Under the pieces are notes generated by a model. That model was not told the DNA's origin, searched no databases, and worked only from the letters and a program-made list of their open reading frames with translations. Position numbers and translations under genes: made by a program. Below are positions 38,058 to 62,144 of a stretch of 64,000 nt of DNA, one piece after another. The DNA comes from Laetmonice hystrix (lineage: Eukaryota). Position 1 is the stretch's first letter; the number at the start of each line of letters is the position of its first letter. The stretch spans positions 15,004,001 to 15,068,000 of the forward strand of contig OZ249447.1 of the NCBI GenBank assembly GCA_965235115.1, given 5' to 3'.

Positions 38058-39134
38058 CTAATCTCTGGACTTCCTGGAGCCGGCAAACAGGATGGACTCG
38101 GACGACACGGTTCTCAGGCGCTGACGGTGGGCGGTGATCTCCTTGAAGGCCTTGGTGTTGCCCACCCTCTTGCGCTTGTTGGCGAACCACTTCTTGACCT
38201 GTTCCGAGGTGATGTCTCCTGCCTTGGCCATCACTTCAGCAGTGGACGGGCTCGGGTACGGGTGGTCCTCATTACGTTTGTACCACAGGTTCATGATCTT
38301 GACGGCGGTCGGGTTGAGGGCGGCGGACTTCCTCTTACGGGCCAGGACCTTCTGTGTTCCTGTTAGGGTCTGGGTCAAGTCCTCCAGGTCGGCACCGCTG
38401 CGTTCCTCTGGGCGTCTTTGGTGGCAGGAGAAGAGAAGGTGAAGGCTGCTCTCGACACGACTGACAAGGTGGTGCTGGAGGAGGTCGTAGTAACCATGGA
38501 TATTCTGGGACAACCACGGAGTGCTGACGGACTGATGGAGGCTCTTGTTGCGGTCCGTCTCGATCAGCGACGTCTGGTGGTCGTAGAAGTTGCGGAGCTG
38601 GTCCAGTTGTGACCTGTCGCCGACGGTTGATGCTGCACGGAGGAAGTTGTTGTGGAGACTGGGGGCACGGACCTGGAAGGACTCTGGGAAGGTGGTCGGG
38701 GTCGACATCAAGGTGAACGGTAGAGACGCCTGGTGACACTCGCTGTGGATAGCAATCTGTAGGTCCGGGAACATTGGGTGGGCGGCGATTCGCTGTACCT
38801 CAGGGTTGACGGAGTCAGGGATCTGGTAACTGTAGACATCCTGGATTCTGGTCTCAGTGTGGACGACGTCTGGTGGGAGTGGAGACAGAGGGCGGTACTG
38901 CAAGTGGAAGGACACGATGAGCACAAATATCGGAGAAATAATTTGGTCAATCCGCCAGACAAGTATATTGAACTCTTACTAACTCTAACTACACACTTCA
39001 AAATACATCAAGCTCTCTATAAGGAGATGAAGGGGTATTCGAGCCCCATAGCTTACCAAGGTCATAGGGTCAGGAAGATGAGTATCTTCTACCGTGAGGT
39101 CAAGGGTCAGGGCAGCGGGGCGTTTAGAAGTCAT
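38058..39134 (-). CDS. Divergent PBX-like TALE homeobox gene, type A copy 1 (2 exons, 305 aa)
   Basis: Exon 1 39057-39134 (MTSKRPAALTLDLTVEDTHLPDPMTL), intron 38898-39056 (GT-AG), exon 2 38058-38897. Homeodomain RKRKSAALNPTAVKIMNLWYKRNEDHPYPSPSTAEVMAKAGDITSEQVKKWFANKRKR has the TALE PYP loop and WFxNKR. Confidence 0.9.
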
Positions 39135-39955
39135 GGTGGACGTTGCCGAGTAGCTTGATAAGTCGCTTGATTCTGGAGATGTTGATAGCTCGAGTCTCGG
39201 ATGAGGTTTGGCTGACTCCTCTAGCTGGGCCTGTATATATACCGTCCCACCCCTCGGCTGGGGCTGAGTGCCGGGGCTGAGACCATCTTTGAGCTGCCCC
39301 TCGGTTCACACCTCGGCCCTTTGACCTATTGTGGGCCTCAGGAAGGGCGGCTTACTCGCTAACCTGTTTGAAGCCCACTTCAAAAGGAAGGTGTGACTCT
39401 CAGGTCCCAGTTTGCTCTTTCTCAAAAAGGGAGGTGTGAATGAGGTGTAAGCAGGCTTTGCAAACAATACTTTCCCGGATTGTGAACAACATCCGAATAT
39501 TACCTTACGCTCCGTTTATCTCTTATTTTTATTGTCGTATATTACGCGGACAATACACGGACAAGACATACCTTTTTGCTATAAATAATGTTTGATGTAA
39601 CGAAAATAAGGCCTCCTGTCTCCAGGAGACATAGTTTCTGTAACCAGCATGCTCTGCAGTAGATTATGCCATTCATAACTTTACATAATAACAGGGATTG
39701 AATTAAAAGGTTCTAAATGTTTTACACTGAAGTTGTTTTATGAAGATGCCCGTAAGGCATATAGCGGTAAGACTATTAACATTTCTACCAAAACGCGCGT
39801 ATAACCACTAAAACACAATCATTATCCCTAGCTCCAACCCTAACCCCCTAGATCTGACTATCAGATCTCCTCCAACCCCCCAACCCCCCGCCCTAAGTTT
39901 GTGTTCCCAATGGGGATCAGCCGATAAGCACGCAGCACAAAGTCGGAAGAGAAAA

Positions 39956-41169
39956 GGGATACCCCAGGGGAGCGTTTTAGGACCTCTGCTGTATCTACTA
40001 TATGTCAATGATATCATGGACTGCGATACTGCATCAGATTTAAACATGTTTGCAGATGACACAGCGATGGTGGCCCATGGAAGGGACCTGGAAGAAGTCA
40101 CGGCACAGATCAAGGACGACATGACCAAGCTGACAGGATGGTTTAACGCTAACAAACTAACAGTAAATCTCAACAAAACAAAATGTATGTTTTTCAGCAA
40201 GAATGTTCACAAGGACCATGAACTACCTGGCATAGAAGCGAATGGTGTTCAACTAAACTTTGTACATCAATATTCATACCTGGGTGTAACTCTGGACGAC
40301 AAACTACAGTTCAATGAGCATATAAGGAATAGTATTAAGAAAGCAGGTAATAAGGTGTACATGTTAGCAAAGATAAGACAGTTCATCAACACCCAGACAG
40401 CTCTTACCGTATTTAAAGCTATGATACTGCCCTATATAGAGTATGGAAACATCTTTCACGGGACATGTAATGAGGCCTACCAACAGAAGCTACAAGTCAT
40501 TCAAAATAATGGTTTAAAAATAGCGCTGAAAAGGGACATTTTATACAGAACGGTCGACCTACACATAGAAGCTAAGATCATACCTTGTAAATACAGAAGA
40601 CTTGTGATGTTACAAAAACGTATAAAGAGGTCAAGGAGGGTCAGGCACCACTGAACCGCAGAAACATCAGAACAAGAACTCATGAGGCAGCAACACTTGT
40701 CGTGCCATTTCCTAAGTCAGAATTATTTAAGAAATCTAACGCATACAGTAAAACTGTAAATTGGAATGCTTTACCCCCTTATCTAAGAAACTTAGGTGAG
40801 TATAACCGGTTCAAGCAAGAGATAAAAAATTATTATACCAGTATGTTCCTAACAGATAACAATCGTGGCAAGAATTGCTAATAGGGAAATTCAGGCAGAG
40901 TATAAAATTAGTAACATTTAAGTCTATCACTGCGCAGTTGTTATTACCCGAAAATATTTATGTGTCAAGTTGTTCACACTCTGCATTATATGATTACGGC
41001 TTGCTTGGTGAATTACTAAAATAATACTATGACTGTATGTATATTATGTATATATGTCATGTCTGTAGATACTGTACATATTCAAAACAGGACCCCACAT
41101 TTGTTACGGCATCCAGCCGAGTGGGAACTCCTGGGTAAAGATGTCAATAAAAAAAAAAAAAAAAAAAAA
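39956..41169 (+). mobile_element. 5'-truncated non-LTR retrotransposon (CR1/L2/Jockey-like LINE): RT C-terminus, 3' UTR and polyA tail
   Basis: GIPQGSVLGPLLYLLYVND...MFADDT...YLGVTLDDKLQF; after a frameshift near 40620-40650 it continues ...FKKSNAYSKTVNWNALPPYLR...FKQEIK to stop 40879-40881; AATAAA merging into an A-run at 41146-41169. Confidence 0.9.
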
Positions 41170-41559
41170 GGCTGTAGGTTGAAGTGTTCAAAATAGCCAC
41201 CAGGTGGTGTCAACAGTATCTCAGGAGTAACACCAGGGGGCATTGTGGTATGCGTACTTTGACAGACTGCAGACTAGCGATGATTTCGCATACTATTATA
41301 AATCAATTCACACAAACGAAAACAGCACACCGGGGTTTCTTAAAGAATTATGAAAAAAAAAATCGATTAATAAATTATCCAGCTTAAAGATGTAAAAAAA
41401 TTAATACTAATGCAGCTGAACATAAATAACATGGCACAAACGTTGATAGCGACATATGTATGATCATCTAAAATATTATATTGATTGACAGGCATGGGGA
41501 GTATTAGACATCCAAACTCTTTCGTTACAATCTCTATTCTATAGAAATACACATGACCT

Positions 41560-41860
41560 TGCTTTTGAAGTGGGGTTCAAAAGGCTCCACACTCGAGACG
41601 CCCTCGTTTAAGTGGTACTCAACATACTTGTAACGGTAACACCTCATTCACATGCACCGTCCTATTCTAGGAGGAGCAAACTGGGACCTGAGAGTCACAC
41701 CTTCCTTTTGAAGTGGGCTTCAAACAGGTTGGCGAGTAAGCCGCCCTTCCTGAGGCCACAATAGGTCAAAGGGCCGAGGTGTGAACCGAGGGGCAGCTCA
41801 AAGATGGTCTCAGCCCCGGCACTCAGCCCCAGCCAAGGGGTGGGACGGTATATATACAGG
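41560..41860 (+). promoter_or_regulatory. Type-A promoter: T-box half-sites, TTTGAAG palindromes and TATA (mirrored at ~39230-39450 for copy A1)
   Basis: TAACACCT 41637, TCACACCT 41695, AGGTGTGA 41777, TTTTGAAGTGGGGTTCAAAA 41563-41582, CTTTTGAAGTGGGCTTCAAA ~41705, TATATATA 41849-41856; ATG at 41956. Confidence 0.6.
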
Positions 41861-41955
41861 CCCAGCTAGAGGAGTCAGCCAAACCTCATCCGAGACTCGA
41901 GCTATCAACATCTCCGGAATCAAGCGACTTATCAAGCTACTCGGCAACGTCCACC

Positions 41956-43015
41956 ATGACTTCTAAACGCCCTACTGCCCTGACCCTTGACCTCACGGTA
42001 GAAGATACTCATCTTCCTGACCCTATGACCTTGGTAAGCTATGGGGCTCGAATACTCCCTTCATGTCCTCATTGAGAGATTCAAGTGTAAGAGTTCAATA
42101 TATACTTGAAATCAGTCTGACGGATTGACCAAATTATTTCTCTTTATATTTGTGTTCATCGTGTTCTTCTGCTTGCAGTACCGCCCTCTGTCTCCACTGT
42201 CACCAAACGTCGTCCACACTGAGACCAGAAACCAGGATGTCTACAGTTACCAGATCCCTGACTCCGTCAACCCTGAGGTACAGCGAATCGCCGCCCACCC
42301 AATGTTCCCGGACCTACAGACTGCTATCCATAGCGAGTGTCACCAGGCGTCTCTACCGTTCACCTTGATGTCGACCCCGACCACCTTCCCAGAGTCCTTC
42401 CAGGTCCGTGCCGCCAGCCTACACAACAACTTCCTCCGTGCAGCATCAACCGTCGGCGACAGGTCACAACTGGATCAGCTTCGCAACTTCTACGACCACC
42501 AGACGTCGCTGATCGAGACGGACCGAAGCAAAAGCCTCCATCAGTCCGTCAGCACTCCGTGGTTGTCTCAGAATATCCATGGTTACTACGACCTCCTCCA
42601 GCACCACCTTGTCAGCCGTGTAGAGAGCAGCCTCCACCTATTCTCCTGCCACCAAAGACGCCCAGAGGAACGCAGCGGTGCCGACCTGGAGGACCTGACC
42701 CAGACCCTAACAGGAACACAGAAGGTCCTGGCCCGTAAGAGAAAGTCCGCCGCCCTCAACCCGACCGCCGTCAAGATCATGAACCTCTGGTACAAACGTA
42801 ACGAGGACCACCCGTACCCGAGCCCGTCCACGGCTGAAGTGATGGCCAAGGCAGGAGACATCACCTCGGAACAGGTCAAGAAGTGGTTCGCCAACAAGCG
42901 CAAGAGGATGGGCAACACCAAGGCCTTCAAGGAGATCACCGCCCAACGTCAGCGCCTAAGAACCGTGTCGTCCGAGTCAATCCTGCTTGCCGGCTCCAGG
43001 AAGTCCAGAGATTAG
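41956..43015 (+). CDS. Divergent PBX-like TALE homeobox gene, type A copy 2 (2 exons, 304 aa)
   Basis: Exon 1 41956-42033, intron 42034-42178 (GT-AG, phase 0), exon 2 42179-43015; near-identical inverted copy of A1; CCACCATG start context. Confidence 0.9.
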
Positions 43016-43244
43016 AGAGACCCTCATCATGAACTTTGTAACCACCGGTGCTGCTTGTGTGATCATGTATAGAAACTTGTATATACTATCTACATTATGT
43101 AAATACTACCAACGAATAAATTATTCTATTCCTCACATTTACTTCTTGTTATTACTCCCCTCCCCTGCACGTACCCACCGTAACTGTACTATATCGTCAT
43201 GCCAGAACCCCCAAGGTAAAAACCATAGAAAATTGATAGCAAAA

Positions 43245-43760
43245 AGGTCTCACAAACCAGTCGGGTGCGACTCTCTCTCTCTCTCTTTATCTATGTGATG
43301 TACCTCTCAGCATGAGAGGGGTTACCCTGCATGTTACCCTACATGCAGTAAGATGTTAACAACAACAAGTACGATCTGAGCCTCTCACTTTAAAGTAAGC
43401 TCCAACAGCCAGGAATGTATTACCGACTCTGTCCTGTGTGACTCTACCACCTAGTGAGGTGTTAGATTTCCTTTTGAAGTAGGGTCTCACAAAGCAGGAA
43501 GGTGTCACATTGTCCCTTTGAAGTTAGCTCTATCATCCAGTAAGGTGTTACCGCGTCACTTTATCATCCAGTAAGGTGTGAAGTTACCATTTGAAGTAGA
43601 GTCTCACCAACCGGTAAGGTGTGACTCAGTTCTTTTGATGTTACTGTTTTTCAAAGAACAATGTGTTACAAGCTCAGCGCTTTTATCTGAGATCAAACTG
43701 CAGCTCAAAGAGAGCCAATAAAATTATGCGTTGTTACGCCAGTATCAGTATAAATAGAGG
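43245..43760 (+). promoter_or_regulatory. Type-B promoter/enhancer of B1 (AGGTGTNA and TTTGAAGT motif array, CCAAT, TATAAATA 43749-43756)
   Basis: Repeated motifs read directly; this is a diverged version of the B2-B5 promoters. Confidence 0.65.
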
Positions 43761-43844
43761 CTCTCATTGGGTGAGCAGGTCATACCATCCTTACTGCTCA
43801 CCGTGACCACATCAAGCTCTCATCCACAAAACGACACCGTTAAG

Positions 43845-44657
43845 ATGGCGACCACTGAGCTGACTTTCCACGACCTTCTCGACATGCTGCCCTTACCCTG
43901 CAGTAGTCCATGCCCTCAGCCTCCAGACAGTCCCCTGTCTCAGCACCAGCACACCGACGCTAACCCGACCTTCCACGATCTACAGACTGCCATCCACAGT
44001 GCCTGCCAACAGACGTCTCTCCCGTTCACCCTGATGTCCACCCCGGCCACCTTCCCAGTGCCCTTCCAGATCCGAGCCGCCAGCCTTCAGACCAGGTTCA
44101 CTACGGAACTCACAGTCACTGACAGTCCAGAGCTGGGCCAGCTTCGTGTCTTCTACGACCAGCAGGTGTCCCACATCGAGATGGAGCGCAACCACAGTCT
44201 ACAGCTGTCCGCCAAGTTACCATGGTTGTTCTTCACCATCAACAGTTACTACGACAACCTCCAGCATCAGCTTGTCAGCCGCGTCGAGAGCAGCCTCAAC
44301 TTCCTCTTTTCCTACCGCCAGCAGCCATACCAACCCAAGGCCAGCCAACATGTCTCTACACCTTGCAAGCAAAAGGTTCCGGTCAGGAAGCCCAAGTCCC
44401 CTTCCCTCAACCCGACTGCGGTCAAGATCATGAGCCTGTGGTACAAACGTAACCAAGCCCACCCGTACCCATCCCAGTCGGCAACTGAAGTGATGGCCAA
44501 GACAGGAGGGATCCGAGCTGAGCAGGTCAGGAAATGGTTCGCCAACAAGCGCAAGAGATCTGGATACACCAAGAAGTTCGACGTCTCCGGCAAGCCCCGC
44601 TGCAGCACAACTGTACCGAGTGATCATCTACTGCTCACCACAGCCACCCGGGAGTGA
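43845..44657 (+). CDS. Divergent PBX-like TALE homeobox gene, type B copy 1 (intronless, 270 aa)
   Basis: AAGATGG start 96 nt after TATA; homeodomain RKPKSPSLNPTAVKIMSLWYKRNQAHPYPSQSATEVMAKTGGIRAEQVRKWFANKRKR; AATAAA at 44812. Confidence 0.9.
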   Translation: MATTELTFHDLLDMLPLPCSSPCPQPPDSPLSQHQHTDANPTFHDLQTAIHSACQQTSLPFTLMSTPATFPVPFQIRAASLQTRFTTELTVTDSPELGQLRVFYDQQVSHIEMERNHSLQLSAKLPWLFFTINSYYDNLQHQLVSRVESSLNFLFSYRQQPYQPKASQHVSTPCKQKVPVRKPKSPSLNPTAVKIMSLWYKRNQAHPYPSQSATEVMAKTGGIRAEQVRKWFANKRKRSGYTKKFDVSGKPRCSTTVPSDHLLLTTATRE

Positions 44658-45654
44658 ACACGTCTGCTTTATGGGCATGAACTGGCGATTGCTGTAATTT
44701 ACCATGACTGTCTATAATGTGTAAAAATGTGTAATTTACATGTATTATATGTATTATATCTTGTACATGTATCACCAAGGTGCAATATCAGATGTATATA
44801 CTGTACATAGCAATAAAATAAAAATCCATTCTAATTTACATCCTCTGGTCGATCTGTTCCTGTATATTTTCAATTTTCATTTCGTTGTTTTTCCTCGACA
44901 ACCTATCATTCGTTATTTAAAATTTACAATCTCAAAAAATCCTTTCAAGTCATATATTACTCGTCAATCACGATTTATATTCAGATTGCTCGTAATCTTC
45001 CTGAAGGCGAAAAGGAGTTCTTCGTAGCGCCATCTGTTGGTTACAGATTTTCAAACTTTGAGCAGAATAGAGGCACGTTCAAAGCGCCACCTAGTGAAAT
45101 CATTCCAAGACCAACTCAATAATTTTTATGGTTTCAGCGGGTCAAAAATCAACTTTTAATTTTCCTTTGAAATTTTTCTATTACTCTTTTCACCAAGGTC
45201 CAAGAGAGTTATAATATATTAATATACACGTATTTCTTGTCCCAGTTACCCACGATGCTATCTCAGCTATATATGTGTATAACGTACGTTTCATGTTTTT
45301 TATCATAATAAATACTGGTCATATCCCAAAGAAGTCTCCCGAGTTGGTCCTCTGACAAAGTGTCTCTTCGTCTTGAACTCGTCCCCTGGTCAAGTCAGCA
45401 GCACCGAATCCTATTCTCGGTTGGTTACGGACAACATATTCTTCATGTGCAGTTATCAGTGCCCTTCTGGGGGTTCTTGAAGATAATGTATTAACACCAC
45501 CTGGTGACTACTTTGAACACTTCATTCTCCCGTCTTCCCCCTTTCCGACCGCATGCTGTGTTGACAAATGACCAATTTTTTCCATCGAATAGAAATCCCT
45601 TAGAAGTTTTCTCTATCAACACTGCCCTGTAACACTCTGCCACGAAACAACGTG

Positions 45655-46215
45655 TTAAGTTTCCTTTTGTTGTAGGCTCTCACAAACCAATCGGGTGCGA
45701 CTCTCTCTCTCTCTGTGATGTACCTCTCAGCATGAGAGGTGTTACCGACTCTGTCTTAATGACTCTTATAATGTAGTACGGTGTTAATGTACCTTTTGAA
45801 GTAAGACCTCAACAACAAGTAAGATCTGAGCCTCTCACTTTGAAGTCAGGCTCTAATAGCCAGGAATGTGTGACCGACTCTGTCCTGTGTGACTCTACCT
45901 CCTAGTAGGTGTTAGATTTCCTTTTGAAGTAGGGTCTCACAAAGCAGGAAGGTGTCACATTGTCCCTTTGAAGTTAGCTCTATCATCCAGTAAGGTGTTA
46001 CCGCGTCACTTTATTATCCAGTAAGGTGTCAAGTTACCATTTGAAGTAGAGTCTCACCAACCGGTAAGGTGTGACTCAGTTCTTTTGATGTTACTGTTTT
46101 TCAAAGAACAATGTGTTACAAGCTTAGCGCTTTTATCTGAGATCAAAGTGCAGCTCAAAGAGAGCCAATCAAGGTATGCCTTGCGCACCTCCCGCCAGTA
46201 TCAGTATAAATAGAG
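45655..46215 (+). promoter_or_regulatory. Type-B promoter, short form (B2)
   Basis: Same motif array; TATAAATA 46205-46212. Confidence 0.65.
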
Positions 46216-48880
46216 GCCCTCATTCAGCGAGCAGGTCATACCATCCTTACTGCTCACCGTGACCACATCAAGCTCTCATCCACAAAACGACACCGTGAAG
46301 ATGGCGACCACTGAGCTGACTTTCCACGACTTTCTCGACATGCTGCCCTAACCCTGCAGTAGTCCATGCCCTCAGCCTCCAGACAGTCCCCTGTCTCAGC
46401 ACCAGCACACCGACGCTAACCCGACCTTCCACGATCTACAGACTGCCGTCAACAGTGCCTGCCAACAGACGTCTCTCCCGTTCCCATTGATGTCCACCCC
46501 AGCCACCTTCCCAGTGCCCTTCCAGATCCGAGCCGCCAGCCTTCAGACCAGGTTCACTACGGCACTCACAGTCACTGACAGTCCAGAGCTGGGCCAGCTT
46601 CGTGTCTTCTACGACCAGCAGGTGTCCCACATCGAGATGGAGCGCAACCACAGTCTACAGCTGTCCGCCAAGTTACCATGGTTGTTCTTCACCATCAACA
46701 GTTACTACGACAACCTCCAGCATCAGCTTGTCAGCCGCGTCGAGAGCAGCCTCAACCTCCTCTTCTCCTACCGCCAGCAGTCCGACCAACCCAAGGCCAG
46801 CCAACATGTCTCTACACCTTGCAAGCACAAGGTCCCGGTCAGGAAGCCCAAGTCTCCTTCCCTCAACCCGACTGCTGTCAAGATCATGAGCCTGTGGTAC
46901 AAGCGTAACCATAACAGTTTCGGAGGAAACTGATTGTTAATAAATACGCGATACTTACCTCATAACATATAAGAGACTTACAGTTTCTCGATTCCCAATG
47001 GTCAAAAAATTTAATAAAAGTGTTCTAAGTGAAACAAGAATGAGTTCCACCAGAACTCCTGTCTATCTAACATATTCGGTGTATGGCTCCCTCTAGCGGA
47101 GATCCGCTGGATCGTGCGCCCCCTAGTGTCCATGTGACCTAGTAGTCAGATTTAAATGACCACTAAGCGGGGAGGCGGGAAGGGCCTTTAATGTTATGAG
47201 GTAAGTATCGCGTATTTATTAACAATCAGTTTCCTCCGAAACTGTTATGGTTAATTACATACGCTTCTACTTACCTCATAACATATGAGAGCGAGTGCTA
47301 AGCATAGGAGGTGGGAAGACAGAAATATTCACTCCACAGCCATACCCATTGAGGCGTAGGCCCATGCACTTGTTTTCACCTGGGAACGTTTATAGCGTTA
47401 AATCCTGAAAACTGCTATACGTGTGTAGGGAAGGTAATACCTGCTCCTTGTGAGGGAACCAAGGGCCGGAAGACTGAACAGATAACATCTGCCCCCCCCC
47501 CTTCTTTTTGTCCCACGCTCTCCATCATGCAGTGACGTGGACAAACAACGGCCTGGACCACTATGAGGTGGCCCAGACTAAAAGGGCGTCCTCCTGACCA
47601 CCAGGTTCACGCAATAAGACTGTAAAGGTGGTGTCTGATAGCCAAAAGGCAGCCTCGAGGAATTCGGCGAAGGTTACTCCATTAATAGGAGCCAAGGACG
47701 CAGAAATCGCCCGCACCTCAAGAACCTTAACACGATGAAACTGTAAAGACTTGGACAAGGCCGCGTCTGCCCGAGTCAAGGCTATAAGCTAAAGCCTTCC
47801 ACCTTCCACAATTGTAGCGGGCGTGATGTCGAGGGGTACGCACTCACCAAAGACACGACACCCCCTCTAACAGGCAGCTCTACAGGCGCTCCTCATCATC
47901 CGGCCTGAGCTCGGAGCTCAGAGCCAGGGTCGGGTTGTTAGCCACAGATTGTGGTAACAAAGGTCACAATGGAGGAACAGGGGCCAAAACGCGCTCCCCC
48001 GAAGGCAGTAAATTCCGACCACCTCAGCCCTGAGGTTAATGCTACAGGAACATGGTCTTTCAAGTACAACTTGGTGTACGGAAGACATAAGATAAATAAG
48101 GGGGGACGCAACAATGCGTTCAGTACCACCGACCAACTCCAGTAAGGGGCCTTCCTCGGCTTTACGGGCTCAAGAAATATCAAATTGCGTAATAGCGCAC
48201 TGAGTTCCCGTCAAGAGCTAAAGGAACCTCCGCCTGGTGCTGATGCATTTGCTGCAATCACTGATCTGATTCCTCGCACGGCGGAGACCGACAACCCCCG
48301 AAGAAACCTGTCAAGCAGACAATCGGCTACTGACAGGGGGCGGTGAGATCAAAGTCATATGTTCCCCTGCCCATTCAATAAGGAAGGCCCGCTGTCTCGA
48401 TACGCAGCTTGCGAGGAGGGCCTATGTTTCTCGGCCATGCTCTGGGCCGCTTGTCCCGAGAATCCACGCTTCTCACCTCTGTTCCTGACAAGCAGAGGGG
48501 TGTAAATCGAAAATCTTCGGAGCTGAATGCCACTTCCCTCTCTAAAACAACAGATCGGGGTCATAAGGCAGGGATCGAGCCCAATCCCGCAACAATTCTG
48601 ATATCTCTGTGAAACAAGGCCAACCCGGCCCATATTATGACTGGCCCAGACAGGCGCGTTTCGCGGCGCGTTCGAGACGCGTCGGCCATTTTCATGCACG
48701 CCTCTTGACGCACGCACGCACGCACGCCCCTGTGTGTCCCCGGCTTTAAACTTGCCCTGCACATGAAATGACGCACAACGTCACTCGGTGCTGGCGACAC
48801 CACCAGAGGATGTCCCCGGTTATCCGGAATAGTAGCAGTGACCGAGTGTCCCTTTGATTTAACAGATAGGTCACTGCCAT

Positions 48881-49043
48881 CCCAACTAACACACAACCTT
48901 TTCACAACGTTGAATAAAGTTGTAGTTTGGTCACTTCACAACGTTGTGTCTAACGAAACTACAACGTTGTGGCAACATAGAAGACCAAACAAATTTACGT
49001 AGCGTTATGGGAACGTTGTAGCAACGTAATATTGCTAGCGGGG
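48881..49043. mobile_element. Small CACTA/EnSpm-like MITE nested in the DIRS element
   Basis: Imperfect termini CCCAACTAACA / TGCTAGCGGGG, AT on both flanks, internal CAACGTTG repeats. Confidence 0.45.
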
Positions 49044-51958
49044 ATCGTACTGTCGGGGTGGATCAGGACTACTGATCGCGTCGGTAGCCAGGCGAAGTGA
49101 TGAAGAGCCTAGGAAAATTGCCTTTAATTCTAGACCATATATGTGTCCGTGTCACACCCCGCTCCAACTATTTAGGAAATAGCTCACAAACCTCCCTGAG
49201 ATATCTGTGGAGAAGGGAAACATCCGGGGTTAGATATTCCAAAGTACACCCCTCTGAAAAGTCTGTGGATCGATCCACCACTGGAGGAACTGCGCCAGAG
49301 ACCGAGGAAGGAGAACCCTGCACCCGCAGAGGAAATCCCTGCTCGAGCGCCACGCACTCAACAACGCAAACTGCATCAGTCACCCATGCAGTTTGCCAAG
49401 CGGTCCTGAGTTCAAAAAAGAAACTCCGATAAACTGCAGACATAGCTTGTCGGTGCAACTTCCAGGCCTATACACTTCACCAGGTTTATCCTCCATCCCA
49501 GGGGAGGTAAAACTGAGAGCAACTGGGTGGCCTGAACGGGCCACACCATGTAAGGATGAAGCTCCATCCCTTCCGACCTGTCCAGCTTCCCAACTGTGTT
49601 GCCAGCTAGGTAAACTCGGACCGAACGGCAGAACTACCAACTGGAAACATGGACTGTCGTTGGAACACTGAGAAACTTCTAGTGCAAGAAAGTGTCCTCG
49701 ATGTCTATCGTGTCTATCGTATCTACCTATAGACACTGAGACACCCCACGTTTCTAGAGAACCCCTACGGGTTGAAGGAAAATAATTCCCGGGGCGGACT
49801 CACTACCGACCCCAAAGTGACGACTGCACCTTTCTCTCGAAGTTTCCTGATCTCTCCTATTCTTTAGCTAGAACTTAAGGAAACAGAAAGGGAGGGCCCT
49901 GCGAGAGTGAGCCGATGAACGGGCCATACCTGGCGGGCTCGACAAACTCCAGACGCAATCACTCCCTGAGAACAGACAGGGTCCACGGAATCGGGTAATG
50001 ATGAAGCAAGCTCACCGCTTGTGTGTGCCTCGTTGTAAGCGAACGCTTAATTCCGAACCAAAATGTCCAGATCCAACTCAGGCTTATATCGCTAGACGGC
50101 TATGCAAAACTAAGGACTTAGAGTCGAACCCCGGCGAAACAGGATAGAGTAGATAGGAATTAAAAACCAAACTCTATGCCGAGTGACGTATAAGGCCAGG
50201 GCCGCCCTAGTCCTATCGCCGAAAGATATAGCCTCCGGCGACTATAACCAAGGTCGGCCTAGATGGCCGCCGCCGTGACTAGGCGAACACGGTTTGCCTG
50301 AGCAAAGAAAGGGCACTTTGGAACTGAAAAGGTCGAAGGCTCCTTCAGTCCAAGAGAAAGGTCCCTTGGGTCCAACCTAGAACCCCCTACCAGGAAGGTC
50401 CGAATGCAGAGTACATTCCGCCATAAAAAACGGATTAACGGGGGTTGATCTCCCCTAACGTCCGACCGAAGTAGGGTACAAGGGGAAGGGATCCGTGAAA
50501 AGATCCATAGTTGGACAAACTGAGCGTAGATCCTCTACACCCCCCGAAACTCTGCCCGTAACCGTCTAGATATTGGCAACCAATCCATGCCAAATCGCCA
50601 CAAATAACAGACCATATAGGACTCTACTTAATCCGATGTGATTAACTCAAAAAGAATTTTTGAGTCACCATGTTTTTCCTTTGTCTCTCAATTTAAAAAC
50701 TGTATCAACATGCAGTTTTCCAGATAGTCTGATCTTTACCACCGTTTCCATAGACTACTCACAGCAATAGATGGCGCTACAAGGACTCTACCTCGTGCCA
50801 TCATGGTCCCCAAGCCAGTTTAAATAACTTCATATGTGTCAGGCGGGGGACAAAGAGAACAGGAAATTTTAGGATTTTCCAAAAAAGCCGATTTAAAGAT
50901 TTTCAAGGCTTACTTGACTTCAAGGTGCTGCGGAGACCCTGCAAGCATACAAGAGAGAGGCCGCCTCTAGCCTACTGACTCCCCCGATCCGCGAGGGAGG
51001 CGCGATTACGCTGCCTGGCCGACAGAGCACTCCTGGATCGGTCGCGTAAGCCTAGGCCATAGGCCTATACTGATCGACATCTCTCATGGTCCCAAGATCT
51101 AGACCAGACCATGGTAACGACGCTGTCCTATGAAAACCCCAAAGTCTAGTGCGACGGCCAACTTGACCCGGGCAACGATCCTGAGATCGACGACCAGCGT
51201 GAAAGAGACGTTCCTAGGTACAGACGATCACGAACGCTCCCGATCTCGGTCTGGATGCCGCCTCTGGGATTAAATATATATAATATCGCCTGCACAATAT
51301 CGTCTCAATGGTCTAGATGCGAGAGATATCTTCCTGGCATGTAGATCTCTAGCCAAGGCATCGATCTCGAACTCGATCTTGATCTAGTCATTACGGGGAG
51401 ATCGATCAACAAACAAAATCGTCTATGCGATCTTGTCTCTTAATGCACTTAGTGCGAGAGAACTCTTTCCTCGCATGTATCCTAGGCCTAGATCTCTAGC
51501 TCCAGGCACCGATCCTGATCCTTATCCCGATCCTGATCTGGATTCCGATCCTAACTGGATCCCGATCTCATCGATCTCGAGCTCGACGGACCTGCCAAAT
51601 CTTGTGCCTATCAAGCGGGGAAATCTTCCACTTGATGCCATCTCCAGCGGGAGATAAACTGTATCCCTAATTCATGACGGGTGCAAATAACCCCAAAATT
51701 CGGGAGTTCTCCCGCCTAAGCAGGAGTAACGATCTCGACCTCGAGCCAGGAACGAACTGGAGTAAGGCTCGGTGCCTGATCTTGATCAGATCGGATCAGA
51801 TCGGGGGATCGAACCGCAGATCATCAATTGATCGACTGCCCGACATCGTCTTAGTGAGCCTATACGAGAGATCTCAATCCTCGCATGCCCGAGGCACCGA
51901 GGCCCAAAGGCACATATGCCCGATCTCAGGAAGAATCCCCGATTGTCTACGCGCGTCT

Positions 51959-52350
51959 GCGCGGCTGGCCCGGGTGGTCTCCTCGAGGAGACCACCGGAC
52001 GCAGACGAGGGGGAGAACGGTCGCTCGAGCTCTGGCTCGAGGCGAACGCGAGTCTCCCCTCGCGTCAAGAGATCGATCCCGAGCCGACTCGCGCGGCTGG
52101 CCCGGGTGGCCTCCTCGAGGAGACCACCGGACGCAGACGAGGGGGAGAACGGTTGCTCGAGCTCTGGCTCGAGGCGAACGCGAGTCTCCCCTCGCGTCAA
52201 GAGATGGATCTAGGGCTCGCGCGGCTCGCGCGGCTGGCCCGGGTGGCCTCCTCGAGGAGACCCCCGGACGCAGACGAGGGGGAGAACGGTCGCTCGAGCT
52301 CTGGCTCGAGGCGAACTCGAGTCTCCCCTCGCGTCAAGAGATCGATCCAG
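51959..52350. repeat. Three ~132-137-bp tandem repeats in the DIRS gag-like region
   Basis: Units start at 51959, 52091 and 52228 (GCGCGGCTGGCCCGGGTGG...GCGTCAAGAGAT). Confidence 0.9.
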
Positions 52351-54394
52351 AGACGCTGAACGTCTGCGTGTGATCGTCTCAACGTCTCAACGGGCTTAAT
52401 TCCCTTCCTCGCGTGGGAAGCCCGAGGCACCGATCCCGAGACATTATCATTTCGACCCAGTGATCGGTGCCTACGCTGTACGCCACCCGCTGTGCGTGAT
52501 TGGGCGTATCAGCGTATTCAGACTGGTCAGGTGGGTGCGTAGGTCGAGGATCCATGACCTTACGCTTACCCACCTAGTCCTGCACGGGACTGACCAGCTG
52601 ATTGAGACGTGACGTCACACCCTTAGCCACCACGGTGGGCGGGTGACACGCTTCATTGCCTGGAGCAAGCACAGTGTGCACCCCGGCTCACTGCTGACCG
52701 TTCCGCCTGGTCAGACAAGGCCAAAGGAAAACTTGTCGGTCAACATGGCCTCGCTTACCTGGACTAACAGAGGCCGACAAGGAGTGTACCTGGCCCTTAG
52801 AATAACTAAGGGAACATGCTGAATAACTTCTACCACACAAGGAGGTAGTGCGTCTACCTATACTGGTAGACTACAAACAACAAATAGACAGGAATGACCA
52901 AAGGGAATACAGAACTATAAGGAAAAAACCACGGTACTCACGAAGACGTCCTGCGGTAGCAGTGGTCATTTCAAATCTGACTACTAGGTCACATGGACAC
53001 TAGGGGGCGCACGATCCAGCGGATCTCCGCTAGAGGGAGCCATACACCGAATATGTTAGATAGACAGGAGTTCTGGTGGAACTCATTCTTGTTTCACTTA
53101 GAACACTTTTATTAAATTTTTTGACCATTGGGAATCGAGAAACTGTAAGTCTCTCATATGTTATGAGGTAAGTAGAAGCGTATGTAATTAACCAAGCCCA
53201 CCCGTACCCATCCCAGTCGGCAACTGAAGTGATGGCCAAGACAGGAGGGATCCGAGCTGAGCAGGTCAGGAAGTGGTTCGCCAACAAGCGCAAGAGATCT
53301 GGATACACCAAGAAGTTCGACGTCTCTGGCAAGCCCCGCTGCAGCACAACTGTACCGAGTGATCATCTACTGCTCACCACAGCCGCCCGCGACTGAACAC
53401 GTCTGCTTTATGGGCATGAACTGGCGATTGCTGTGATTTACCATGACTGTCTATAATGTGTAATAATGTGTAATCTACATGTATTATATCTTGTACATGT
53501 ATCACCAAGGTGATATATCAGATGTATATACTGTACATAGCAATAAAATAAAAATCCATTCTAATTTACATCCTCTGGTCGATCTATTCCTGTATATTTT
53601 CAATTTTCCTTTAGTTGTTTTTCCTCGACAACCTATCATTCGTTATTTTAAATTTACAATCTCAAAACATCCTTTCAAGTCAAATATTACTCGTCAATCA
53701 CGATTTATATTCAGAGGATTGCTCGTAATCTTTCTGAAGGCGAAAAGGAGTTCTTCGTAGCGCCACCTGTTGGTTACAGATTATCAAACTTTGAGCAGAA
53801 TAGAGGCACGTTCAAAGCGCAACCTAGTGGAATCATTCCAAGACCAACTCAATAATTTTGATAGTTTCAGCAGGTCAAAAATTAACTTTTAATTTTCCTT
53901 TGAAATTTTTCTATTAGGCCCCTACTCTTTTTACCTAGGTCCAAAAGAGTTATAATATATTAATAATATACACGTATTTCCTGTCCTAGTTACCCACGAT
54001 GCTATCTCAGCTATATGGTGTATAACATACGTTTCATGTTTTTTATCATAATAAATACTGGTCATATCCCAAAGAAGTCTCCCGAGTTGGTCCTCTGACA
54101 AAGTGTCTCTTCGTCTTGAACTCGTCCCCTGGTCAAGTCAGCAGCACTGAATCCTATTCTCGGTTGGTTACGGACAACATAATCTTCATGTGCAGTTATC
54201 AGTGCCCTCTGGGGGTTCTTGAAGATACTGTATTAACACCACCTGGTGACTACTTTGAACACTTCATTCTCCCGTCTTCCCCCTTTCCGACCGCATGCTG
54301 TGTTGACAAATGACCAATTTTTCCCATCGAATAGGAATCCCTTAGAAGTTTTTTCTATCAACACTGCCCTGTAAGACTCTGCCACGAAACAACG

Positions 54395-55085
54395 TGTTAA
54401 GTTTCCTTTTGTTGTAGGCTCTCACAAACCAATCGGGTGCGACTCTCTCTCTCTGTGATGTACCTCTCAGCATGAGAGGTGTTACCGACTCTGTCTTAAT
54501 GACTCTTATAATGTAGTACGGTGTTAATGTACCTTTTGAAGTAAGACCTCAACAACAAGTAAGATCTGAGCCTCTCACTTTGAAGTCAGGCTCTAATAGC
54601 CAGGAATGTGTGACCGACTCTGTCCTGTGTGACTCTACCACCTAGTGAGGTGTTAGATTTCTTTTTGAAGTAGGGTCTCACCAACCAGTAAGGTGTCCCT
54701 TTGTCCCTTTGAAGTTAGCCCTATCATCCAGTAAGGTGCTACCGACTCTGTCCTGTGTGACTCTACCACCTAGTGAGGTGTTAGATTTCCCTTTGAAGTA
54801 GGGTCTCACAAAGCAGGAAGGTGTCACATTGTCTCTTTGAAGTTAGCTCTATCATCCAGTAAGGTGTTACCGCGTCACTTTACTATCCAGTAAGGTGTCA
54901 AGTTACCATTTGAAGTAGAGTCTCGCCAACCGGTAAGGTGTGACTCAGTTCTTTTGATGTTACTGTTTTTCAAAGAACAATGTGTTACAAGCTCAGCGCT
55001 TTTATCTGAGATCAAAGTGCAGCTCGAAGAGAGCCAATCAAGGTATGCCTTGCGCACCTCCCGCCAGTATCAGTATAAATAGAGG
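54395..55085 (+). promoter_or_regulatory. Type-B promoter, long form with internal ~128-bp duplication (B3)
   Basis: ACCGACTCTGTCCTGTG...CCAGTAAGGTG block present twice; TATAAATA 55074-55081. Confidence 0.65.
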
Positions 55086-55169
55086 CCCTCATTCAGCGAG
55101 CAGGTCATACCATCCTTACTGCTCACCGTGACCACATCAAGCTCTCATCCACAAAACGACACCGTGAAG

Positions 55170-55997
55170 ATGGCGACCACTGAGCTGACTTTCCACGACC
55201 TTCTCGACATGCTGCCCTTAGCCTGCAGCAGTCCATGCCCTCAGCCTCCAGACAGTCCCCTGTCTCAGCACCTGCACACCGACGCTAACCCGACCTTCCA
55301 CGATCTTCAGACTGCCATCCGCAGTGCCTGCCAACAGACGTCTCTCCCGTTCACCCTGATGTCCACCCCGGCCACCTTCCCAGTGCCCTTCCAGATCCGA
55401 GCCGCCAGCCTTCAGACCAGGTTCACTACGGCACTCACAGTCACTGACAGTCCAGAGCTGGGCCAGCTTCGTGTCTTCTACGACCAGCAGGTGTCCCACA
55501 TCGAGATGGAGCGCAACCACAGTCTACAGCTGTCCGCCAAGTTACCATGGTTGTTCTTCACCATCAACAGTTACTACGACAACCTCCAGCATCAACTTGT
55601 CAGCCGCGTCGAGAGCAGCCTCAACTTCCTCTTTTCCTACCGCCAGCAGCCATACCAACCCAAGGCCAGCCAACATGTCTCTACACCTTGCAAGCAAAAG
55701 GTTCCGGTCAGGAAGCCCAAGTCCCCTTCCCTCAACCCGACTGCGGTCAAGATCATGAGCCTGTGGTACAAACGTAACCAAGCCCACCCGTACCCATCCC
55801 AGTCGGCAACTGAAGTGATGGCCAAGACAGGAGGGATCCGAGCTGAGCAGGTCAGGAAATGGTTCGCCAACAAGCGCAAGAGATCTGGATACACCAAGAA
55901 GTTCGACGTCTCCGGCAAGCCCCGCTGCAGCACAACTGTACCGAGTGATCCTCACCACAGCCACCCGGGAGTGAACACGTCTGGTTTATGGGCATGA
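55170..55997 (+). CDS. TALE homeobox type B copy 3 (275 aa; C-terminal tail frameshifted after the homeodomain)
   Basis: Homeodomain intact; an 8-nt deletion (ATCTACTG) between 55950 and 55951 changes the tail to PHHSHPGVNTSGLWA*. Confidence 0.85.
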   Translation: MATTELTFHDLLDMLPLACSSPCPQPPDSPLSQHLHTDANPTFHDLQTAIRSACQQTSLPFTLMSTPATFPVPFQIRAASLQTRFTTALTVTDSPELGQLRVFYDQQVSHIEMERNHSLQLSAKLPWLFFTINSYYDNLQHQLVSRVESSLNFLFSYRQQPYQPKASQHVSTPCKQKVPVRKPKSPSLNPTAVKIMSLWYKRNQAHPYPSQSATEVMAKTGGIRAEQVRKWFANKRKRSGYTKKFDVSGKPRCSTTVPSDPHHSHPGVNTSGLWA

Positions 55998-58092: not shown

Positions 58093-58655
58093 TTAAGTTT
58101 CCTTTTGTTGTAGGCTCTCACAAACCAATCGGGTGCGACTCTCTCTCTCTGTGATGTACCTCTCAGCATGAGAGGTGTTACCGACTCTGTCTTAATGACT
58201 CTTATAATGTAGTACGGTGTTAATGTACCTTTTGAAGTAAGACCTCAACAACAAGTAAGATCTGAGCCTCTCACTTTGAAGTCAGGCTCTAATAGCCAGG
58301 AATGTGTGACCGACTCTGTCCTGTGTGACTCTACCTCCTAGTAGGTGTTAGATTTCCTTTTGAAGTAGGGTCTCACAAAGCAGGAAGGTGTCACATTGTC
58401 CCTTTGAAGTTAGCTCTATCATCCAGTAAGGTGTTACCGCGTCACTTTATTATCCAGTAAGGTGTCAAGTTACCATTTGAAGTAGAGTCTCACCAACCGG
58501 TAAGGTGTGACTCAGTTCTTTTGATGTTACTGTTTTTCAAAGAACAATGTGTTACAAGCTCAGCGCTTTTATCTGAGATCAAAGTGCAGCTCAAAGAGAG
58601 CCAATCAAGGTATGCCTTGCACACCTCCCGCCAGTATCAGTATAAATAGAGGCCC
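58093..58655 (+). promoter_or_regulatory. Type-B promoter, short form (B4)
   Basis: 6 AGGTGT and 5 TTTGAAGT counted by eye, plus TTCAAAG, AGATCAAAG, CCAAT and TATAAATA 58641-58648. Confidence 0.65.
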
Positions 58656-58736
58656 TCATTCAGCGAGCAGGTCATACCATCCTTACTGCTCACCGTGACC
58701 ACATCAAGCTCTCATCCACAAAACGACACCGTGAAG

Positions 58737-59549
58737 ATGGCGACCACTGAGCTGACTTTCCACGACTTTCTCGACATGCTGCCCTTACCCTGCAGTAGTC
58801 CATGCCCTCAGCCTCCAGACAGTCCCCTGTCTCAGCACCAGCACACCGACGCTAACCCGACCTTCCACGATCTACAGACTGCCGTCAACAGTGCCTGCCA
58901 ACAGACGTCTCTCCCGTTCACCCTGATGTCCACCCCAGCCAGCTTCCCAGTGCCCTTCCAGATCCGAGCTGCCAGCCTTCAGACTAGGTTCACTACGGCA
59001 CTCACAGTCACTGACAGTCCAGAGCTGGGCCAGCTTCGTGTCTTCTACGACCAGCAGGTGTCCCACATCGAGATGGAGCGCAACCACAGTCTACAGCTGT
59101 CCGCCAAGTTACCATGGTTGTTCTTCACCATCAACAGTTACTACGACAACCTCCAGCATCAGCTTGTCAGCCGCGTCGAGAGCAGCCTCAACCTCCTCTT
59201 CTCCTACCGCCAGCAGCCAGACCAGCCCAAGGCCAGCCAACATGTCTCCACACCTTGCAAGCAAAAGGTTCCGGTCAGGAAGCCCAAGTCTCCTTCCCTC
59301 AACCCGACTGCTGTCAAGATCATGAGCCTGTGGTACAAGCGTAACCAAGCCCACCCGTACCCATCCCAGTCGGCAACTGAAGTGATGGCCAAGACAGGAG
59401 GGATCCGAGCTGAGCAGGTCAGGAAGTGGTTCGCCAACAAGCGCAAGAGATCTGGATACACCAAGAAGTTCGACGTCTCTGGCAAGCCCCGCTGCAGCAC
59501 AACTGTGCCGAGTGACCATCTACTGCTCACCACATCCAGCCGGGAGTGA
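58737..59549 (+). CDS. TALE homeobox type B copy 4 (intronless, 270 aa)
   Basis: Intact ORF nearly identical to B1; same homeodomain. Confidence 0.9.
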   Translation: MATTELTFHDFLDMLPLPCSSPCPQPPDSPLSQHQHTDANPTFHDLQTAVNSACQQTSLPFTLMSTPASFPVPFQIRAASLQTRFTTALTVTDSPELGQLRVFYDQQVSHIEMERNHSLQLSAKLPWLFFTINSYYDNLQHQLVSRVESSLNLLFSYRQQPDQPKASQHVSTPCKQKVPVRKPKSPSLNPTAVKIMSLWYKRNQAHPYPSQSATEVMAKTGGIRAEQVRKWFANKRKRSGYTKKFDVSGKPRCSTTVPSDHLLLTTSSRE

Positions 59550-60559
59550 ACACGTCTGTTTTATGGGCATGAACTGGCGATTGCTGTGATTTACCATTAC
59601 TGTCTATAATGTGTAAAAATGTGTAATCTACATGTATTATATGTATTATATCTTGTACATGTATCACCAAGGTGCTATATCAGATGTATATACTGTACAT
59701 AGCAATAAAATAAAAATCCATTCTAATTTACATCCCCTGGTCGATATATTCGTGTATATTTTCAATTTTCCTTTAGTTGTTTTTCCTCGACAACCTATCA
59801 TTCGTTATTTAAAATTTACAATCTCAAAACATCCTTTCAAGTCAAATATTACTCGTCAATCACGATTGATATTCAGAGGATTGCTCGTAATCTTTCTGAA
59901 GGCGAAAAGGAGTTCTTCGTAGCGCCACCTGTTGGTTACAGATTTTCAAACTTTGAGCAGAATAGAGGCACGTTCAAAGCGCAACCTAGTGGAATCATTC
60001 CAAGACCAACTCAATAATTTTGATAGTTTCAGCAGGTCAAAAATTAACTTTTAATTTTCCTTTGAAATTTTTCTATTAGGCCCCTACTCTTTTTACCTAG
60101 GTCCAAAAGAGTTATAATATATTAATAATATACACGTATTTCCTGTCCCAGTTACCCACGATGCTATCTCAGCTATATGGTGTATAACGTACGTTTCATG
60201 TTTTTTATCATAATAAATACTGGTCATATCCCAAAGAAGTCTCCCGAGTTGGCCCTCTGACAAAGTGTCTCTTCGTCTTGAACTCGTCCCCTGGTCAAGT
60301 CAGCAGCACCGAATCCTATTCTCGGTTGGTTACGGACAACATAATCTTCATGTGCAGTTATCAGTGCCCTCTGGGGGTTCTTGAAGATACTGTATTAACA
60401 CCACCTGGTGACTACTTTGAACACTTCATTCTCCCGTCTTCCCCCTTTCCGACCGCATGCTGTGTTGACTAATGACCAATTTTTTCCATCGAATAGAAAT
60501 CCCTTAGAAGTTTTCTCTATCAACACTGCCCTGTAAGACTCTGCCACGAAACAACGTGT

Positions 60560-61245
60560 TAAGTTTCCTTTTGTTGTAGGCTCTCACAAACCAATCGGGT
60601 GCGACTCTCTCTCTCTGTGATGTACCTCTCAGCATGAGAGGTGTTACCGACTCTGTCTTCATGGCTCTTATAATGTAGTACGGTGTTAATGTACCTTTTG
60701 AAGTAAGACCTCAACAACAAGTAAGATCTGAGCCTCTCACTTTGAAGTCAGGCTCTAATAGCCAGGAATGTGTGACCGACTCTGTCCTGTGTGACTCTAC
60801 CACCTAGTGAGGTGTTAGATTTCTTTTTGAAGTAGGGTCTCACCAACCAGTAAGGTGTCCCTTTGTCCCTTTGAAGTTAGCCCTATCATCCAGTAAGGTG
60901 CTACCGACTCTGTCCTGTGTGACTCTACCACCTAGTGAGGTGTTAGATTTCCCTTTGAAGTAGGGTCTCACAAAGCAGGAAGGTGTCACATTGTCCCTTT
61001 GAAGTTAGCTCTATCATCCAGTAAGGTGTTACCGCGTCACTTTATTATCCAGTAAGGTGTCAAGTTACCATTTGAAGTAGAGTCTCACCAACCGGTAAGG
61101 TGTGACTCAGTTCTTTTGATGTTACTGTTTTTCAAAGAACAATGTGTTACAAGCTCAGCGCTTTTATCTGAGATCAAAGTGCAGCTCAAAGAGAGCCAAT
61201 CAAGGTATGCCTTGCGCACCTCCCGCCAGTATCAGTATAAATAGA
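60560..61245 (+). promoter_or_regulatory. Type-B promoter, long form (B5)
   Basis: 8 AGGTGT and 7 TTTGAAGT counted by eye; duplication period 128 bp (60775 vs 60903); TATAAATA 61236-61243. Confidence 0.65.
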
Positions 61246-61331
61246 GGCCCTCATTCAGCGAGCAGGTCATACCATCCTTACTGCTCACCGTGACCACATC
61301 AAGCTCTCATCCACAAAACGACACCGTGAAG

Positions 61332-62144
61332 ATGGCGACCACTGAGCTGACTTTCCACGACTTTCTCGACATGCTGCCCTTACCCTGCAGTAGTCCATGC
61401 CCTCAGCCTCCAGACAGTCCCCTGTCTCAGCACCACCATACCGACGCTAACCCGACCTTCCACGATCTACAGACTGCCGTCAACAGTGCCTGCCAGCAGA
61501 CGTCTCTCCCGTTCACCCTGATGTCCACCCCGGCCACCTTCCCAGTGCCCTTCCAGATCCGAGCCGCCAGCCTTCAGACCAGGTTCACTACGGCACTCAC
61601 AGTCACTGACAGTCCAGAGCTGGGCCAGCTTCGTGTCTTCTACGACCAGCAGGTGTCCCACATCGAGATGGAGCGCAACCACAGTCTACAGCTGTCCGCC
61701 AAGTTACCATGGTTGTTCTTCACCATCAACAGTTACTACGACAACCTCCAGCATCAGCTTGTCAGCCGCGTCGAGAGCAGCCTCAACCTCCTCTTCTCCT
61801 ACCGCCAGCAGTCGGACCAACCCAAGGCCAGCCAACATGTCTCCACACCTTGCAAGCACAAGGTCCCGGTCAGGAAGCCCAAGTCTCCTTCCCTCAACCC
61901 GACTGCTGTCAAGATCATGAGCCTGTGGTACAAGCGTAACCAAGCCCACCCGTACCCATCCCAGTCGGCAACTGAAGTGATGGCCAAGACAGGAGGGATC
62001 CGAGCTGAGCAGGTCAGGAAGTGGTTCGCCAACAAGCGCAAGAGATCTGGATACACCAAGAAGTTCGACGTCTCCGGCAAGCCCCGCTGCAGCACAACTG
62101 TACCGAGTGATCATCTACTGCTCACCACAGCCGCCCGCGACTGA
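61332..62144 (+). CDS. TALE homeobox type B copy 5 (intronless, 270 aa)
   Basis: Intact ORF; same homeodomain. Confidence 0.9.
   Translation: MATTELTFHDFLDMLPLPCSSPCPQPPDSPLSQHHHTDANPTFHDLQTAVNSACQQTSLPFTLMSTPATFPVPFQIRAASLQTRFTTALTVTDSPELGQLRVFYDQQVSHIEMERNHSLQLSAKLPWLFFTINSYYDNLQHQLVSRVESSLNLLFSYRQQSDQPKASQHVSTPCKHKVPVRKPKSPSLNPTAVKIMSLWYKRNQAHPYPSQSATEVMAKTGGIRAEQVRKWFANKRKRSGYTKKFDVSGKPRCSTTVPSDHLLLTTAARD

Follow-up and report, generated by a model that had tools for sequence, protein, structure and literature searches.

PADRE-TALE homeobox gene arrays in the annelid Laetmonice hystrix: a probable SPILE-type expansion

What does a tandem series of divergent TALE homeobox genes on one annelid chromosome represent: a lineage-specific set of developmental regulators, ordinary members of a canonical TALE family, an error of assembly, or a segment multiplied without function? 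The question is raised by the window analysed here, the whole 64,000-nucleotide stretch C13:15004001-15068000 (C13 being contig OZ249447.1) of the 627-Mb, 35-contig genome of Laetmonice hystrix. Its homeobox genes fall into two subfamilies, A and B, and a divergent paralogue, C, lies past the window end. In our view the locus probably belongs to a lineage-specific, SPILE-type expansion of TALE homeobox transcription-factor genes that took place in an annelid. In limpets and mussels SPILE genes, the spiralian-specific TALE clade (Morino et al. 2017), specify the fates of blastomeres within a highly conserved cleavage programme. They are, to our knowledge, the largest known taxon-restricted homeobox expansion, and most of what we know of them comes from molluscs and from fragmentary assemblies.

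Class of the repeated genes

A previous sequence-only reading had listed two type-A and five type-B copies with the TALE PYP loop and the motif WFANKRKR. All seven open reading frames (ORFs) were found in place, and ORFs, Pfam matches and motifs agree with that count. Pfam Homeobox_KN (PF05920) matches each of the seven copies with E values around 1e-10, the match at E 8e-11 lying above the gathering score. Every copy has HPYP, and with it the three-residue P-Y-P loop that separates helices 1 and 2. Apart from B8 (WFANKHKR) and the broken copies, all A and B copies have WFANKRKR, and C has WFANRRQR; the DNA-contact residues W48, F49, N51 and R53 are kept in the C13 copies, again bar B8 and the broken ones. 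Ala50, which had been taken as distinctive, occurs in IRX and MKX too, and the distinguishing signature is WFANKRxR.

A maximum-likelihood tree was built from 45 homeodomains, namely seven taken from the window genes, 22 from database matches and 16 sequences from supplementary file 8 of Barton-Owen et al. In this tree PBX, MEIS, PKNOX, TGIF, IRX, MKX and TALE-I are split from the SPILE references plus A, B and C with support 99/98, and A, B and C lie within the clade that holds NfSPILE-A to E. The window genes group with Capitella TALE-VIII (Ct_VIIIA2), Ct_orphC, Spirobranchus TALE-VIII (Sl_VIIIH) and unnamed relatives (94/79), the last of these probably annelid as well, and this annelid group is sister to the mollusc A/C clade (91/83). 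Relations inside the group, between the window genes, TALE-VIII and orphan C, are a polytomy on an alignment of 63 columns only. The annelid genes of TALE clade VIII (Paps 2015), from Capitella and Spirobranchus, and the orphan C of Capitella (Barton-Owen et al. 2018, PMC6118893) have in common with the window genes the motifs WY-RN--HPYPS and AEVMAKAG-type; for TALE-VIII, PADRE (the domain considered below) is not reported in that study, and arrays of this size are not described there. Homeodomain identity is 22-32% to the canonical families versus 56-67% to the annelid-type unnamed relatives, the nearest named homeodomains being those of annelid TALE-VIII and Ct_orphC (57% between Ct_orphC and B). 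In a full-length tree A, B and the sister-species proteins P0001 and P0002 form a polytomy, and C pairs with P0005, which adjoins P0002 in the sister species; an A/B duplication specific to the species is not rejected by the approximately unbiased (AU) test (p 0.19).

That the genes are ordinary orthologues of PBX, MEIS, PKNOX, TGIF, IRX or MKX is next to impossible: among the canonical branches PBX, which has Lys52 (WF-NKR) in common with them, does lie nearest (92/82), and in Foldseek the whole model aligns with PBX, BELL and KNOX proteins at E of about 1e-5 to 1e-4, but such orthology is refuted by the homeodomain identity, the split at 99/98 and the lack of a PBC or MEINOX Pfam match even at E<=1, and the canonical TALE genes sit elsewhere in the genome with Pfam scores of 68-72 bits against 46 here. 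As to PBX/Exd itself, which is marked by PBC-A/B domains and a near-invariant homeodomain with Gly50 (WFGNKRIR), the window genes have Ala50, and their homeodomains are 29-32% identical to that of Capitella Pbx.

The region upstream of the homeodomain gives a second line of evidence. A word-indexed protein search returned four relatives only; an exhaustive profile search gave 3,249 matches, of which 141 clusters reach E<=1e-30, and the best of them mostly align over their full length. The named family members are uncharacterised bivalve proteins (Mytilus, Pinctada, Saccostrea). The literal PADRE peptide occurs in P0119, whose homeodomain is that of oyster TALE-VI_13, and the homeodomain of P0013 is that of Pinctada HD13, a TALE-VII gene. 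When the PADRE segment alone is compared, B matches P0119 with an E of 2e-7, and A matches P0013 with an E of 3e-13 over 123 residues. The region upstream of the homeodomain thus matches bivalve PADRE proteins by itself, and A and B therefore carry PADRE, a domain defined by Paps et al. (PMC5322547) and later tied to the SPILE A/C clade (PMC8524836). With the tree and this domain, a SPILE-type expansion, as opposed to PBX orthologues, is upheld; the suspicion of the sequence-only reading that the gene class might be known was also right, the class being already known from molluscs and annelids.

In an AlphaFold 2 model based on 69 sequences, PADRE is predicted to form three long helices (residues 74-161, predicted local distance difference test score, pLDDT, >95), followed by a canonical three-helix homeodomain, both domains having pLDDT >90. 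No Pfam domain besides the homeodomain, PBC and MEINOX included, matched any of the 69 family members at E<=1. Against Swiss-Prot models, Foldseek aligns the whole model to BELL, PBX, KNOX and MEIS with E values of 2e-5 to 5e-4 and template-modelling (TM) scores of 0.2-0.3. These weak fold matches make PADRE a possible PBC/MEINOX homologue, which we take as a lead and not as a finding. A complex prediction with the A and B PADRE segments, run without controls, scored 0.00 and speaks neither for nor against a heterodimer.

Gene copies, arrays and assembly

The features of the locus are listed below in window positions, or in C13 positions past the window end. The gene models, with their introns and promoters, are predictions from sequence signals.

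38058-39134, minus strand: gene A1 (PADRE and TALE homeodomain), from ORF, Pfam and splice signals
A1 parts, minus strand, from sequence signals: exon 2 38058-38897, intron 38898-39056, exon 1 39057-39134, TATA ~39228-39241
39306-39439, 41695-41784, 43574-43624, 46067, 54936, 58503 and 61098: sites of the octamer AGGTGTGA, upstream of TATA boxes
39899-40654, plus strand: reverse-transcriptase fragment of the long interspersed nuclear element (LINE) type, a truncated ORF at the centre of the A1/A2 palindrome (Pfam RVT_1, E 2.4e-11)
41848-43015, plus strand: gene A2, with TATA 41848-41861, exon 1 41956-42033, intron 42034-42178 and exon 2 42179-43015 (read directly)
43388-44657, plus strand: B1 with 5' flank, comprising upstream repeats with AGGTGTGA, CCAAT box, TATA ~43749 and single-exon coding sequence 43845-44657
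45703-46002, 54520-54872 and 60682-61034, plus strand: 128-bp tandem repeat upstream of B genes, carrying AGGTGTGA
46301-46911, plus strand: B2 pseudogene, 5' part, with TAA at codon 17 and broken inside the homeobox
46912-53183, no strand assigned: non-autonomous transposon of 6.3 kb inside the B2 homeobox, with 205-nt terminal inverted repeats 99% identical and target-site duplication TAACCA
53184-53396, plus strand: B2 pseudogene, 3' part (remaining homeodomain and tail), from ORF, Pfam and insertion analysis
55170-55997, plus strand: B3, 275 aa, homeodomain intact, C-terminal tail altered or shifted
58737-59549, plus strand: B4, intact, 270 aa
61332-62144, plus strand: B5, intact, 270 aa, the reference copy
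62145-64000, plus strand: spacer of the next unit, with B6, B7, B8 and C following past the window end
C13:15069021, 15071610 and 15074205: positions of B6, B7 and B8 (six-frame search with B5)
C13:15077429-15078607: C (same search)

The A ORFs were at first listed as 38058-38924 (minus strand) and 42125-43015 (plus strand). They are real, but each is only part of what the predicted splice signals make a two-exon gene. All A copies share a TATA box, a Kozak ATG and an exon 1 of 78 nt that codes for 26 residues, an N-terminus that resembles those of B and of the sister-species protein. The A introns measure 144-169 nt, are in phase 0 and have a polypyrimidine tract and a CAG acceptor; a GTAAG donor is matched as a pattern in 18 of the 20 copies. 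The exon-2 frame of A1 is intact and ends in a stop. A1 and A2 are arranged head to head as an inverted pair, with 94-98% complementarity between the arms.

The B copies are all intronless. Each has a CCAAT box and, 96 nt ahead of the ATG of MATTELTF, a TATA box, and AATAAA follows the stop by about 155 nt (range 132-256 nt). This ATG (at 43845, 46301, 55170, 58737 and 61332) is the real start, the GTG and TTG starts given earlier being those of the bacterial code. C has its own TATA box and ATG, and as far as sequence signals tell, a poly(A) signal and a TATA promoter accompany each copy.

At the window locus A1, A2, B1, B4, B5, B6 and B7 are intact; in the second array, described below, the same holds for 17 of 18 copies of A and for 17 of 18 of B. 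One codon is deleted from B8, which also has R53H. The five B homeoboxes of the window are real, but not all five are genes: B2 is dead, through a nonsense codon and the transposon, and B3 has a changed tail. The k-mer depth of the B2 transposon is about 11,000 versus about 66 for single-copy sequence, which suggests some 170 genomic copies. A GC-rich 137-bp tandem repeat lies inside this transposon, at 51950-52348.

The start of a further B unit had been noticed at the window end, and the array does run on: with B5 as query, a six-frame search found B6, B7, B8 and C beyond it. The C homeodomain shares 56% identity with the B one and contains one inserted residue. The B direct repeats are spaced by 2,456-3,567 nt, or by 8,869 nt at the transposon insertion. 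A second array occupies 140 kb at C13:10.93-11.07 Mb, 4 Mb upstream, and holds 18 A-B units of 7.0-9.9 kb, each with one gene of A, one of B and a fragment of A. The window and upstream loci are homologous without a break over 41563-45093, which spans A2, B1 and their flanks, and the ancestral unit is therefore the A-B pair. Together the two arrays hold about 20 A, about 26 B and one C, or about 47 copies on one chromosome, so that two subfamilies in a young tandem array still turning over, as first read from the window, are supported on a larger scale.

Two further observations concern the upstream array. Each of its units (C13:10930000-11068000) has a 360-nt fragment of the A PADRE region just upstream of A, and a repeat of about 750 bp that is present three times. 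In the distal half of the array the tail variants of B alternate, suggesting duplication in two-unit blocks.

Genome-wide, the Pfam profile detects at least 107 TALE homeoboxes, about 46 of them in the two C13 arrays and about 38 in an array on C1. The C1 array likewise consists of tandem intronless TALE homeobox ORFs, but these have only about 30% identity to B. At C20:4063625-4064152 one 887-residue open frame holds two TALE homeoboxes, the architecture reported for TALE-IV/SPILE-B genes.

Could haplotigs or mis-joined repeats have inflated the copy number? Near-identical repeats of 7-8 kb are hard to assemble. Three public DNA runs from one sample hold the locus; they are DNA, because the spacers are covered too, and they probably come from the assembled individual, in which case they check the assembly and are silent on the population. 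In the Logan contigs of these runs, unique flanks have depths of 54-66 (run X1) and 72-81 (run X2), against 1130 and 1292 for the B-ORF contig with the upstream-array variants. The latter is about 16-17 times single copy, which fits the 17-18 copies assembled. Moreover, the units of the two loci are built differently, 4 Mb separate the loci on a single chromosome-scale contig, and the copies carry individual variants, unit-length variants and a transposon with its target-site duplication. An assembly artefact is thus very improbable, and the concern that the copies might be one is answered by the k-mer depth of the B contig.

Selection and the fate of the copies

If the copies encode working proteins, their differences should be distributed accordingly. 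By the Nei-Gojobori method (NG86), the ratio of non-synonymous to synonymous rates (dN/dS, or omega) was 0.16 for A between loci, 0.30 for B between loci, 0.27 for B within the window locus, and 0.50 for A versus B (dS 0.77). In a test where each variant is counted once, omega was 0.20 for A (p 1.6e-10) and 0.53 for B (p 0.004), with 0.12 for the B homeodomain. Variants at codon positions 1, 2 and 3 numbered 14, 10 and 42 in A (p 1e-6), and 17, 18 and 45 in B (p 8e-5). Per site, the variant rate among B1-B7 rose from 0.026 at position 2 through 0.047 in the spacer to 0.101 at position 3. Between A1 and A2 there were 20 synonymous and 9 non-synonymous differences (omega 0.13, p 2e-7). CpG hypermutation was rejected as the cause of the third-position excess, which stays when CpG sites are left out. 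Most of the variation thus falls on third codon positions, and the proteins are therefore under purifying selection or were so until recently. Identity to the sister-species proteins is 79-84% in the homeodomain, 53-61% in PADRE and 18-72% (mostly 18-46%) in the rest, the highest value outside the domains being that of the A C-tail with P0002.

The window and upstream loci show 22 fixed differences in A and one in B, though the two genes were duplicated as one block. B may have been exchanged between the loci by gene conversion, or replaced more recently.

Several points weigh against a functional expansion. Neither NG86 nor the variant counts allow for transition bias or gene conversion. Among the window copies the divergence of the B ORFs (1-3.5%) is no lower than that of the spacers (0.3-3%), and the constraint on B is therefore modest. 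The young upstream array has too few variants to show selection, its omega of 0.45-0.6 being not significant. At the window locus damage or alteration affects three of the eight B copies. Introns and promoters are called from signals in the DNA. Lastly, a search of public runs with window positions 41500-47400 and one upstream-array unit found the three DNA runs and no indexed RNA run. Despite its total, the divergence of B is distributed as in a translated, constrained frame.

Some of these points would suit a simpler account, in which unequal crossing-over multiplied a segment with one functional A-B pair, most copies being redundant, effectively neutral and decaying, and copy number having no function. 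The upstream array is nearly homogeneous (dS about 0.008), with an omega indistinguishable from 1; ORF and spacer divergence are similar among the window B units; and dead or altered copies are already present, namely B2, B3, B8, and one A and one B of the upstream array. Yet about 42 of the 47 copies retain complete frames, promoters and splice sites, and the older window copies (dS 0.07-0.11 among themselves) keep the third-position excess, with omega of 0.13-0.5. Constraint therefore continued after duplication at the window locus. We regard passenger amplification as a possible but rather unlikely explanation of the arrays.

From the ancestral A-B pair, B alone was amplified at the window locus as a 2.6-kb unit, and at the upstream locus the whole A-B unit of 7-8 kb was amplified 18 times. 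Unequal exchange brought about the amplification, and copies are still being lost, by decay seen as a nonsense codon, a transposon insertion and the R53H change.

Upstream repeats, expression and known systems

Each B gene is preceded by the 128-bp tandem repeat listed above. Its 69 genome matches all fall within the two C13 arrays, which makes it a 5' element specific to these arrays; the idea that it is a genome-wide transposon was rejected on the same count. The octamer AGGTGTGA, which we take to be the T-box half-site consensus, occurs 13 times in the window versus 3.1 expected. In the 84 kb examined there are 27 occurrences, 25 of which precede a TATA box of A, B or C by 65-860 nt, and 11 copies upstream of C sit in a tandem repeat of 65-72 bp (C13:15076708-15077389). 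This clustering was noticed post hoc and its copies are not independent, and we offer the octamer as a shared upstream motif only as a hypothesis.

Another motif was seen in another species. TGTCA is the MEIS/TGIF-type TALE site. About 13 TGTCA cores lie within 400 nt of the promoter upstream of P0008, a PADRE-TALE relative in GCA_029979725.1, and may point to TALE autoregulation.

When might the genes be expressed? SPILE genes are typified by expression that is maternal or, in early cleavage, zygotic, and that is staggered along the animal-vegetal axis. In limpet and mussel the SPILE A/C genes, which carry PADRE, are expressed zygotically from the 4-16-cell stage onwards (PMC8524836). By analogy with the SPILE/TALE genes of limpet, mussel and Owenia (PMC8524836, PMC12550047), expression in early cleavage, at zygotic genome activation, may be expected here. 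The proteins would then be sequence-specific DNA-binding regulators made zygotically in early cleavage, and, if other spiralians are a guide, many short and nearly intron-free copies could give a burst of transcripts within short cell cycles, copy number acting as dosage. One can go further and see in the A-B arrays a copy-number device by which two partner PADRE-TALE factors would be delivered in a burst when zygotic transcription first starts in the cleavage embryo of this annelid. The switch would be the array-specific upstream repeats with the T-box-type AGGTGTGA, common to the otherwise unalignable A, B and C promoters, and PADRE would be a diverged PBC-type helical interaction domain, SPILE having arisen from PBX. 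We put this extended version forward with strong doubt.

The nearest parallel is found in the SPILE A/C genes of molluscs (NfSPILE-A/C; clades VI, VII, X, XV and XVII of oyster and pearl oyster), which likewise have PADRE, of about 90-120 aa, directly upstream of a WFANKRxR homeodomain (PMC5322547, PMC8524836). They too have undergone lineage-specific tandem duplication, with eight near-identical tandem copies in Lottia (PMC8524836), and the similarity spans both domains. Unlike them, the window genes stand on the annelid side, sister to the mollusc clade and not inside it; the scale, at about 47 copies, is much larger, and the repeat unit is a pair of paralogues, A-B. The mammalian arrays of DUX4/D4Z4, Dux and Obox are similarly tandem, multi-copy and compact homeobox arrays, with rapid turnover and a proposed role in the early embryo. 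Unlike all of these, the window genes are of the TALE and not the PRD class, so that homology is limited to the homeodomain fold, and each window unit has an ordinary TATA promoter.

The gene class, the PADRE domain and tandem duplication had thus already been described. What is new is an annelid instance with about 47 copies at two loci and the A-B pair as the amplified unit, together with complete predicted gene models and, from codon-position statistics, evidence of purifying selection. The locus shows a mode of expansion in an annelid, in which amplification takes either the whole A-B pair or a part of it, and copies arise and die within one species. It extends PADRE to the annelid branch and offers a candidate shared upstream motif. 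If embryo RNA shows many copies firing at genome activation, the arrays would provide a tractable invertebrate counterpart of those of Dux and Obox.

The remainder of the window is of less interest. Inspection of long ORFs at 1-36000 recognised no gene. At 25999-26733 a 34-bp tandem repeat of 21.6 copies yields a repetitive ORF of 231 residues, and a 21-bp minisatellite of 12 copies lies at 35619-35872.

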